A DNA stretch of 41,151 nucleotides from Octopus bimaculoides (lineage: Eukaryota): NCBI RefSeq assembly GCF_001194135.2, contig NC_068987.1, forward strand, positions 11,601,907 through 11,643,057. Direction: 5' to 3'. Positions 30,501 through 33,500 of the stretch are shown one piece after another (the stretch's first letter is position 1; each line of letters starts with the position of its first letter). Position numbers and translations under genes: made by a program. Below the pieces are notes generated by a model, which ran no database searches, was not told the DNA's origin, and saw nothing but the letters and a program-made list of their open reading frames with translations.

Positions 30501-33500
30501 CATATTCAAAAGTGCACTGGAAGAAGATATCTGAACAAAGAAAGCACCAAATATGGTTATCAGTAAAAAGAAATATTATTTTATTGTACAGTAATACATA
30601 TAAAGTTATGTGCCCTTGCTAGTTGAGACAACTATATGAATGGTGCTTTTTATGTGCCACCAGCATGGGAGCCAGTCAGGTGGCACTGGCATCAACCATG
30701 CTCAAATGGTGCTTCTTACATGCCACTGGCATGGGACCAGTCAGCTGGCACTGGCATCGGCTACATATAAAATTATGTGCCCTTGCTTGTTGAGACAACT
30801 ATAAGCAGTAACTATGTGTTGGTGACAGGAAAGGCATCCAGCCAAAACAAAAAAATATTGCCTAAGAAAATAAAAAAAACAAGACAACAAAAACTGTTCA
30901 ACCCATGCTAGCATGGAAAAGTAGCAAGCTTCTTACCACACGGCCACTTCTGCACCTATATATATATATATATATATATATATATATATATATGGAAAGA
31001 GAGAGAGAGAGGAGGAAAGAGAGAGAGAGAGGAGGAAAGAGAGAGAGAGGAGGAAAGAGAGGGAGAGAAGGAGAGTGAGGTGGGGAGAAAGAAAATTAGA
31101 AAAATATTAAAACATCTGATGTCAAATAAGTCAGCATCAAATCAGCAATGCCAAATAGGCAGTGCCAAAAAGGCTGTGCCAAAACGGCTGTGCCAAAACG
31201 TCTCCTACCCACGAGTCAAAGAATTGGATATGGAAATAATGATCTTCTGGGTGCTTACTATGAACATCAAGTACACTAAGTACATAAAGTAAATTTTTTT
31301 AGTGTTTTACAACTCACCTCTTTTAGCTGGTTCCATAGTCGTAATTGGTACTGTAACTATTGACTCACAGGATCCACTCTGGAACCTAATGTCATCCAAT
31401 GCAATATCACTGGTATATGTCTTGCCACGAACTCCTTCAAATATGATTACATACTTTGTTGGTGATATAATTGTGAAGTTGCCAAGTAGCCAGATGTTAC
31501 CCTGGTTTCCAGTTTGGTGCCAAATCGTCCTGTTTATTTTACTGTTCTTATAGTAGACATTCAGGTCTCCCATACCTTAAATACCAAAAAAAAAAAAAAA
31601 AAAAAAAAAAAAAAAAAAAAAGAAAGAAAAAGAAATATAATAAGAATGATAGTTTATCACAGTTAGCAGGAAGCTGAAAGGGTAAACTTGGGTTGCTACA
31701 CCTGACAGAAAATAGCTGTTAGCATTAAATGAAATACATTGCCTTTATTTGAATTAATTAATTTTGACAAATCTTGCCTCTCACAATATAGAAACATTTC
31801 TCACCAGCAGACAAAATTGAAATGGCATTGTCCTGGAGCACAGTGAAGGAGATGTGCTAGAACAACCCCTCTGACCCACAGGACTCATACTTGCAGATAG
31901 CCATCTCCACCCTAATAGTAGTGAGCATGGATATGGTCTGGGGGTCGAGAACTTTGGAGGCTTGACCATAAACCTGTCTGAGAGTGACTGATACGTTGAT
32001 AGTTTAAATAGTTAAAAAATACTAAACATCATACTAAGAAAAACACAAGCAGGTATTGTCAAAATAACCCTTCTTTCTGTGGGCCTTCAACTTCCGATGG
32101 GGTTGTAATGACTGTGCGACCAGGAGATGGTGACGAGGAATGGCCCCTTTAGCGCATCGCACGGTCGACACAAATATAAAACAAAATGAAATGAGGTTAA
32201 ATGAGTATAAGTGCCAACAAGGAAAAGACAGAGAGAAGCTTCACTACAGAGCCCCCTACCAGTCATTTTGTGTAAGACAAAAATAGAGGATACAGGATGA
32301 AATAACTGTAGCGAAAAGGTGAAAGAACGGTTGGTCATAAACCTGGCACTGAGTCACCATTTAGTAAACGTCTGTGTGTTGGAATCATGTCGGGGTTACC
32401 AGTTTGTAACGACCGTGCGACTAGGAGATGGTGACGAGGAATGGTTCCTTTAGCGCATCGCATGGTCGACACAAATATAAAACAAAATGAAATGAGGTTA
32501 AATGAGTATAAGTGCCAACAAGGAAAAGAGAGAGAGAGAAGCACTGCTACAGGGTCACTGGGTGCTGTTATGTTATAGGGTACATTTTGGATATTTTAAT
32601 CCTGGCTAGGCCCATCCCTCTTTAGGTCCAACCACAGCTAATTCTTTCAGAGAGAATGAAGAGTCAACATTAGTGATGGATCTTTAGCTTTTATCTTTTA
32701 CTTGTTTAAATCACTGAACTGTGGTCATGCTGGAGCAACCCACTTGAAGGGTTTTGGCAAATAAACTGCCCCAAGTACTAATGTTTTTTTAAAAAGTTGG
32801 TACTCATTCTATGAATTTCTTTTGCTGAACTATAACAGCACAACCAAAAACAATGCCTGTTGTGGGACAAATACACACATACATGGTTACATACATATAT
32901 ACATATATATACCCGGTGTATAACATATGGTTTATTATCTAATACATATATATAATAATAATAATAATAATAATAATAATGATAATTATTTCGAATTTTT
33001 GCCACAAGGGCAGCTTGGGGGAAAGTGGGGATGAGTTGATTACATCGACCCCAGTGTTCAACTGATACTTATTTTATCAACCCCAGAAGGATGAAAGGTG
33101 GAATCAATATTGGTGAATTTGAACTCAGAATGTAGCAACAGGCAAAATACTGCTATTGGATAGGCTTCTACACAGTTTCCAACTGCCAAATTCACTGACA
33201 AGACATTTGTTAGTCTGTGGCGATAGTAGAAGATACACTTGCCCAATATGCTACAGAAAGGAACTGAACCTGAAAACATGCTGTTGGAATGTGAGCCCCT
33301 AATTCTCTTTCAATAGGGTAACCCAGCATCACTGCAGTCCAGTGACTGAAGCAAATCTACTTAATTTGTTGGAGGGTTATGTAACATTCCAGATGTCAAA
33401 GCAGTGCAGACATCCCAGCATCTGGTGCATACATGAATTAAATTTAATGATCTAAAACAGTTTATTTAACTCTAGAGGATTTAGGTAGTTATAGAGCCAT

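Follow-up and report, generated by a model that had tools for sequence, protein, structure and literature searches.

An Intronic Miniature LTR Retroelement with a Putative tRNA-Trp Primer-Binding Site in a Giant MAM/LDL-Receptor-A Gene of an Octopus

Introduction

Two direct repeats of 145 and 147 bp, separated by only 156 bp, lie close together in an octopus intron, and they raise the question of whether so small a structure is a retrotransposon at all and, if it is, whether it moved as a miniature element in its own right or is the single leftover of something larger. An earlier note, made from the letters of the sequence, had assigned it the architecture of a TRIM. By published definition a TRIM is shorter than 1 kb, has terminal direct repeats of 100–250 bp, has an interior that a primer-binding site (PBS) opens and a polypurine tract (PPT) closes, codes for nothing and is bordered by a target-site duplication (TSD) (PMC6934838, PMC10886601). 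Accounts of such elements now exist for ants, wasps, cestodes, bivalves, fish and nemerteans, and a literature search found no description of a cephalopod TRIM. Here, the locus is examined within a window of 41,151 nucleotides, that is, the whole stretch of DNA that was analysed.

Anatomy of the Element

Read on the plus strand, both repeats start with TGTA and end with TACA, and thus carry the TG...CA termini of LTRs. They are bordered by GGGT on the left (32100–32103) and by an identical GGGT on the right (32552–32555), which reads ACCC on the sense strand of the element; a four-of-four match of the flanks has a chance probability of about 0.005. Only the minus strand yields the layout of a retroelement. 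On this strand the reverse complement of 32405–32551 is the 5′ LTR (147 bp, sense strand TGTAGCAGTG...GTCGTTACA), which is followed by a three-nucleotide spacer, AAC (32402–32404), and then by TGGTAACCCCGACATGATT; the PBS is TGGTAACCCCGACATGAT (32384–32401). The interior (156 bp, 32249–32404) closes with GGTAGGGGGCTC, the tract that ends at the 3′ repeat, in which the polypurine-tract-like run GGTAGGGGG (32252–32260) is followed by a second spacer, CTC (32249–32251), and by the 3′ LTR, the reverse complement of 32104–32248 (145 bp, sense strand TGTAGTGAAG...GTCATTACA), itself a direct repeat of 32405–32551. The two three-nucleotide spacers are symmetrical, with AAC at the PBS side and CTC at the PPT side.

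The whole element measures 448 bp, well inside the size range of TRIMs with respect to both total length (<1000 bp) and repeats (~100–250 bp), and the GGGT at both flanks is the TSD that the definition includes. What is present is a complete miniature LTR retroelement anatomy, running from LTR through PBS, short non-coding interior and putative PPT to LTR, with a 4-bp TSD. The positions that had been reported for the repeats, the GGGT flanks and the 156-bp interior were all reproduced by reading the sequence, and the TRIM architecture claimed in the earlier note is borne out, with a polypurine tract that is a candidate.

Primer-Binding Site and Polypurine Tract

Starting 3 nt past the 5′ LTR, the PBS TGGTAACCCCGACATGAT matches the complement of the 3′ end of animal tRNA-Trp, CCA included, at 16 of 18 positions, or at 24 of 29 if the alignment to human tRNA-Trp is extended. 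The reference 18-mer TGGTGACCCCGACGTGAT is both the published complement of human tRNA-Trp (PMC6379413, in which the complement including CCA is printed as TGGTGACCCCGACGTGATTTGAACACGCA...) and the tRNA-Trp PBS of ALV-type retroviruses (PMC4635179). For any given 18-mer, a match with no more than two mismatches has a probability of 2e-8 per site and per tRNA. When the two strands of the window (82 kb) were searched for the Trp 18-mer at this stringency, 32384–32401 was the sole site. A partial Trp-PBS-like 18-mer at 17181–17198 (minus strand, four mismatches) has no adjoining LTR end and was taken as a chance match. Beyond the 18-mer, the complementarity continues into the T-loop and T-stem of the tRNA (positions 19–29, at 32373–32383 on the minus strand). 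Over tRNA positions 19–30 there are 8 matches in 12, a score reached by 22 of 10,000 shuffles, this being a post hoc look with the human and not the octopus tRNA as its reference.

The CCA end of eukaryotic tRNAs is added after transcription. The TGG in the PBS, which is the complement of CCA, therefore points to a mature tRNA end and not to a fragment of a tRNA gene; ARAGORN found no tRNA gene in the element. Judged by its complementarity, the predicted primer is tRNA-Trp, and the tRNA-Trp primer site named in the earlier note thus holds when set against a tRNA-Trp complement taken from the literature. Both PBS mismatches are transitions, one of them at a CpG, which is what one expects of a copy with 5.5–8% divergence between its LTRs. 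They may be mutations or they may be host-specific bases, and both are allowed because tRNA-Trp acceptor stems differ among animals, as follows from the PBS of a fly CsRn1 element, TGGTGACCTCGCG (PMC3630058 supplement). A host tRNA-Trp ending in ...ATCACGTCGGGGTCA(CCA) would mean that the PBS carries two mutations, and one ending in ...ATCATGTCGGGGTTA(CCA) that it is intact.

At the other end of the interior, eight of the nine nucleotides of GGTAGGGGG are purines; it is the most purine-rich 9-mer within the final 30 nt there, and it is nonetheless a short run, interrupted by a T. The purine-rich tract had been described as abutting the 3′ LTR; the candidate tract is present, but its contact with the LTR is not, the CTC forming a spacer of 3 nt.

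Coding Capacity, Small-RNA Likeness and Promoter

Open reading frames that overlap the interior reach at most 83 amino acids and gave no Pfam match at E ≤ 1, and no gag or pol remnant was detectable in the interior; the lack of Gag/Pol coding is in keeping with the TRIM definition. The 83-aa frame, which runs across the interior and the 3′ LTR, had no relative in the protein collection searched. A different class of miniature elements, Helenus, Cassandra and Ajax ("TRIMp3"), is defined by LTRs that contain a sequence derived from a tRNA or from 5S rRNA, pol III promoter boxes included (PMC10886601). Animal Helenus elements are like the present one in their miniature LTR form and 4-bp TSDs, are Gypsy-dependent, and in some cases use tRNA-Trp. 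The Rfam search returned no family at the gathering score and no tRNA- or 5S-like match at E ≤ 10, only matches at chance level, and neither A nor B boxes of pol III were matched in the LTR. With LTRs that have neither small-RNA-like sequence nor pol III boxes, an element of the Helenus, Cassandra or Ajax type is ruled out. In sense orientation a TATA-like TTTTATATTTG lies close to the midpoint of the LTR; the canonical poly(A) signal AATAAA is absent from the LTR, which counts against the reading favoured below.

Nor does the element appear to be part of a larger repeated structure, in that the interior has no similarity to the flanks above chance, and no larger repeat pair was found around the element. 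A decayed tandem array of LTR and interior units was considered and rejected, as the similarity of the upstream flank to the interior was at chance level.

The LTR Hairpin

The 3′ half of the LTR contains an inverted repeat, 18 nt long and 89% complementary, which RNAfold folds into a hairpin. In the 5′ LTR it spans 32405–32475 on the minus strand (arms 32405–32420 and 32458–32475), and its 3′ arm runs up to the PBS-side terminus of the LTR; this copy gave z-scores of −2.6 and −3.0. The copy in the 3′ LTR (arms 32104–32119 and 32157–32174) is weaker, CpG transitions having hit the arms; by reading, once the CpGs are restored, the core stem consists of 11 perfect base pairs. Together with the extended tRNA complementarity, the hairpin may form an initiation structure, a speculation for which the analogous case would be the U5/PBS structures of the tRNA-Trp-primed avian retroviruses, with which a U5 hairpin and a complementarity to the T-arm can be compared.

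Divergence of the LTRs and Age of the Insertion

Within the window, blastn aligned the first 133 bp of the two repeats at 94.7% identity (E = 8e-57). A global alignment of the pair gave 11 substitutions (9 transitions and 2 transversions) and one 2-bp indel in the GA run. The earlier count of six transitions plus changes in the GA tract falls short of this total; of the six transitions in the first 133 bp, three are at CpG. Four of the substitutions are clustered within five nucleotides, 5–9 nt from the TACA end and near the start of U3, a crowding that counts against the favoured reading. Counting all 145 sites, the LTRs stand at a K2P distance of 0.081, and counting the first 133, at one of 0.055, values which indicate that the copy is old and agree with its having been called not recent.

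A calibration in years can be borrowed from octopus repeats, for which a JC distance of 0.09 has been equated with about 25 My (PMC13282606), so that the rate is roughly 0.0036 substitutions per site per My. By T = K/2r, the insertion would then be estimated at ~8–11 My, an age that hinges on this calibration and on an Octopus-like host. As the split of O. vulgaris and O. bimaculoides is quoted as 13–33 My (PMC13282606), an insertion of the estimated age would postdate the split, and O. vulgaris would be predicted to lack it if the host is O. bimaculoides-like.

The Host Gene and Its Surroundings

Six minus-strand open reading frames of the window contain MAM domains by Pfam, and when one exon was used as a query in a full HMMER scan, giant multi-MAM proteins were matched. 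The O. vulgaris protein CAI9725294.1 (6043 aa), annotated as "MAM and LDL-receptor class A domain-containing 2-like", gave the frame of the gene: in a tblastn comparison, 18 exons of the window are collinear with its residues 4421–5486 at 74–93% identity. The window thus derives from an octopod that is a near relative of O. vulgaris and yet distinct from it. The exon upstream of the element (33952–34053, minus strand) corresponds to residues 4588–4621 at 85% identity and the exon downstream (31319–31573, minus strand) to residues 4621–4705 at 86%. The element therefore lies inside the 2.4-kb intron between them (31574–33951) and shares the orientation of the gene. The range of the orthologous gene in O. 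vulgaris is 353 kb. Around the element are found assembly gaps and microsatellites, at least eight copies of a SINE-like repeat (~140 bp) and a mariner-like remnant. Surroundings of this kind are typical of an octopus intron.

Candidate Helper Machinery: The CsRn1 Clade

An element that codes for nothing would need the proteins of another, and the earlier note had looked to Gypsy-type integrases on the strength of the 4-bp TSD. This assignment can be narrowed by the PBS. The CsRn1 clade of Ty3/gypsy (with the members CsRn1, PwRn1, AgCR, Kabuki, Boudicca and CsRn1_Cv1) has as its published hallmarks a tRNA-Trp PBS and a 4-bp TSD, stated to be a diagnostic combination, and it has been reported in 9 of the 12 cephalopods examined. 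Its elements are 4–5.5 kb long and code for a Gag bearing a CHCC motif and for a Pol that carries a GPY/F integrase module and whose RT/RH places it in the clade. In the fly element CsRn1_Cv1, the LTRs are 179 bp long and end in ...CTACA, the PBS region TGGTGACCTCGCGTTTTTTGAACA runs into T-loop-like sequence, and a gap separates the PPT GGAGGGGAA from the LTR (PMC3630058 supplement).

The octopus element shares with this clade the tRNA-Trp PBS, the 4-bp TSD, short LTRs with ends of the TGT...ACA type and a G-rich, PPT-like run that is set back from the LTR, and its GGTAGGGGG with the adjoining spacer resembles GGAGGGGAA with its spacer in CsRn1_Cv1. The difference is that CsRn1 elements code for Gag and Pol and the octopus element for nothing, and it can thus be at most a passenger or a derivative. 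It has the PBS and the TSD of the clade and lacks the coding sequence, which means that it is not a CsRn1 member proper, only a putative non-autonomous dependant. As far as the sequence signature goes, the CsRn1 clade is the likeliest source of the enzymes, and we infer that CsRn1-clade Gag and Pol were used in trans.

The life cycle that follows from these features can be outlined. The RNA would be transcribed from the 5′ LTR, with the TATA-like box near its middle as the presumed promoter. Its packaging would depend on Gag and Pol that an autonomous Ty3/gypsy element, most probably of the CsRn1 clade, provides in trans. The tRNA-Trp of the host would anneal to the PBS and prime minus-strand DNA, the G-rich tract would prime plus-strand DNA, and two strand transfers would regenerate identical LTRs. 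Integrase would then trim the ends to TG...CA, and its 4-bp staggered cut would leave the GGGT duplication.

Weighing the Explanations

The same A-B-A layout of two repeats around a unique interior would also be expected if nothing had ever moved, namely from a local tandem duplication of 301 bp in 1.5 units, with the retroelement signals arising by coincidence. Such a coincidence would have to place 16 of the 18 nucleotides of a tRNA-Trp complement, including the non-templated CCA, exactly 3 nt from the end of a repeat, and to add TG...CA termini and a 4-bp duplication of the flanks. The PBS match, the TG...CA termini and the matching flanks taken together effectively refute a plain tandem duplication, which we regard as excluded. 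The identity of the helper leaves more room. A TRIM-type element could have been moved by a group other than CsRn1, be it a different clade of Ty3/gypsy, BEL/Pao or something retrovirus-like, since a tRNA-Trp PBS is also found in ALV-type retroviruses, in Gypsy-32_NVi and in some Helenus families of wasps, and 4-bp TSDs are general for the Gypsy-dependent TRIMs of animals. This is nevertheless improbable in view of the combination of PBS and TSD that is held to mark the CsRn1 lineage, a lineage common in cephalopods.

The weightier question is whether the element propagated. It could instead be a one-off, a copy, internally shortened, of some autonomous LTR retrotransposon primed by tRNA-Trp. 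The shortening would have come about by template switching during the reverse transcription of this very copy, or by a deletion in place after insertion, and the copy would never have multiplied as a miniature and so would belong to no TRIM family. A single copy is what the window contains: when the full element, both LTRs and the interior were run as blastn queries at word size 7, no further LTR or interior turned up in the 41 kb, only low-complexity GA/CT matches, and the joined flanks, taken as a paralogous empty site, matched nothing else across the junction. The LTR lengths also fit, being, at 145–147 bp, slightly below the 179 bp of a coding CsRn1 element, so that a separate non-autonomous lineage is not required. 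What speaks against a one-off is the content of the remnant, as deletion at random inside an element of about 5 kb would be expected only rarely to remove all coding, leave no detectable trace of gag or pol, and spare just the two cis signals for reverse transcription. It is because the 156-bp interior keeps exactly the PBS and the PPT that we lean, if only a little, towards an old, fixed insertion of a protein-less miniature LTR retrotransposon of TRIM architecture, in sense orientation in the MAM/LDL-receptor-A intron, which would have propagated as a miniature element and not arisen by a single accident; the one-off deletion we consider a real but distinctly less probable origin.

Searches outside the window covered other material. 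Exact patterns of the LTR core and of the LTR end with the PBS gave no hits in JGI metagenome contigs, IMG/VR and GTDB, collections that probably hold no cephalopod DNA and are therefore silent on copy number. The neighbouring exons in word searches and an exon frame in an exact look-up gave no match, and the ten further MAM proteins that were matched include none from octopus. One ENA metagenome contig carries a distant orthologue of the host gene (46–59% amino acid identity), beginning downstream of the element's intron, and this contig has no similarity to the element. String searches of the literature with a PBS variant and fragments of the LTR returned nothing relevant.

Relation to Known TRIMs and Significance

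The likeness of the element to the TRIMs of other animals is one of architecture by published definitions and not of compared sequence. Among them, biv-TRIM of bivalves shares a mollusc host and the miniature LTR architecture; it differs in that no canonical PBS is identifiable and its inner domain carries a conserved motif, TGATCCCAAAGGAC (PMC6934838). Membership in biv-TRIM was rejected, as the octopus element has a clear tRNA-Trp PBS and its best match to the motif, TGATTCCAACACAC, agrees by reading at 10 of 14 positions; this 14-mer, with its four mismatches, falls inside the tRNA-complementary stretch. A bolder proposal, which we hold only tentatively, is that the element represents an undescribed cephalopod TRIM family that parasitises Ty3/gypsy elements of the CsRn1 clade and that carries initiation signals beyond the 18-nt PBS, namely a contiguous complementarity of ~29 nt to tRNA-Trp, reaching into the T-arm, and the long U5 hairpin that stops at the end of the LTR.

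The insertion is best regarded as real but ordinary, an old mobile-element insertion whose closest kinds are, by structure, the TRIMs of animals and, as its probable helper, the CsRn1 clade, and the concept of how LTR elements function is unchanged by it. It is useful for the annotation of octopus repeats, a large share of which is still unclassified; short LTR elements readily escape notice or are filed as "unknown". In addition, as a dated insertion in a MAM/LDLa gene that is giant and evolves fast, it is a usable presence/absence marker among octopod species. If the family exists, cephalopods would join the few animal groups from which TRIMs have been described, an incremental gain of one more lineage, and an animal TRIM would be tied to a specific autonomous clade, CsRn1, through its signature of PBS and TSD.

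The LTRs and the Primer-Binding Site

Each LTR of the miniature element contains an internal inverted repeat that is predicted to fold into a long hairpin in the sense RNA, with arms at 32405-32420 and 32458-32475 in the 5′ LTR, and at 32104-32119 and 32157-32174 in the 3′ LTR. The 3′ arm of this hairpin terminates exactly at the LTR end that adjoins the primer-binding site (PBS). RNAfold gave z-scores of -2.6 and -3.0 for the 5′ LTR hairpin, and CpG transitions weaken the predicted fold in the 3′ LTR copy. The two LTRs also differ by a cluster of four mismatches within 5 nt (32240-32244 versus 32543-32547 on the plus strand, alignment positions 139-142), which is located near the U3 start, adjoins a GA/CT run that carries a 2-bp indel, and has a mismatch density far above that of the remainder of the LTR.

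The complementarity to tRNA-Trp extends past the canonical 18 nt, with 24 of 29 positions at 32373-32401 (minus strand) pairing when human tRNA-Trp is used for the comparison. A comparable run-on, TTTGAACA, is found 3′ of the PBS in the fly element CsRn1_Cv1, of the CsRn1 clade of Ty3/gypsy elements. The extension could reflect an extended primer interaction, or it could have been left behind by read-through into the primer tRNA. A second PBS-like site, TGGTGACCCCTTCATTAT, lies on the minus strand at 17181-17198. It agrees with the tRNA-Trp PBS throughout the first 10 nt and at 14 of 18 positions in total; this match was judged to be due to chance because there is no LTR end upstream of it.

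Host Gene and Neighboring Repeats

The gene that hosts the element is a giant MAM and LDL-receptor-class-A (LDLa) repeat gene, of which 18 exons run on the minus strand from 37092 down to 9684, including an LDLa exon at 17339-17443. These exons are collinear with residues 4421-5486 of the Octopus vulgaris orthologue CAI9725294.1, at 74-93% amino acid identity.

The window contains at least eight copies of a SINE-like repeat of ~140 bp (67-93% identity), at 32688-32830, 20707-20847, 9103-9245, 21811-21950 and, on the minus strand, 4891-5015 and 2147-2269, with partial copies at 23791-23831, 28057-28107, 41027-41079 and 14946-14973; some copies adjoin or overlap ORFs that hold MAM exons. The intron next to that of the element carries the remnant of a mariner/Tc1-like transposase ORF (29922-30263, plus strand, 113 aa), whose DDE_3 match is weak. 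Further dispersed repeats near MAM exons, both inverted and direct, pair at 82-90% identity (28055-28274 with 36578-36794, 27395-27505 with 28280-28390, and 33024-33088 with 36444-36508) and are probably other interspersed elements.

A distant orthologue of the MAM gene region, collinear and with 33-59% amino acid identity, was found at 2004-14656 of a contig from an ENA metagenome assembly (ERZ21867824 ctg92889l), which shows that this metagenome contains DNA from an animal host.
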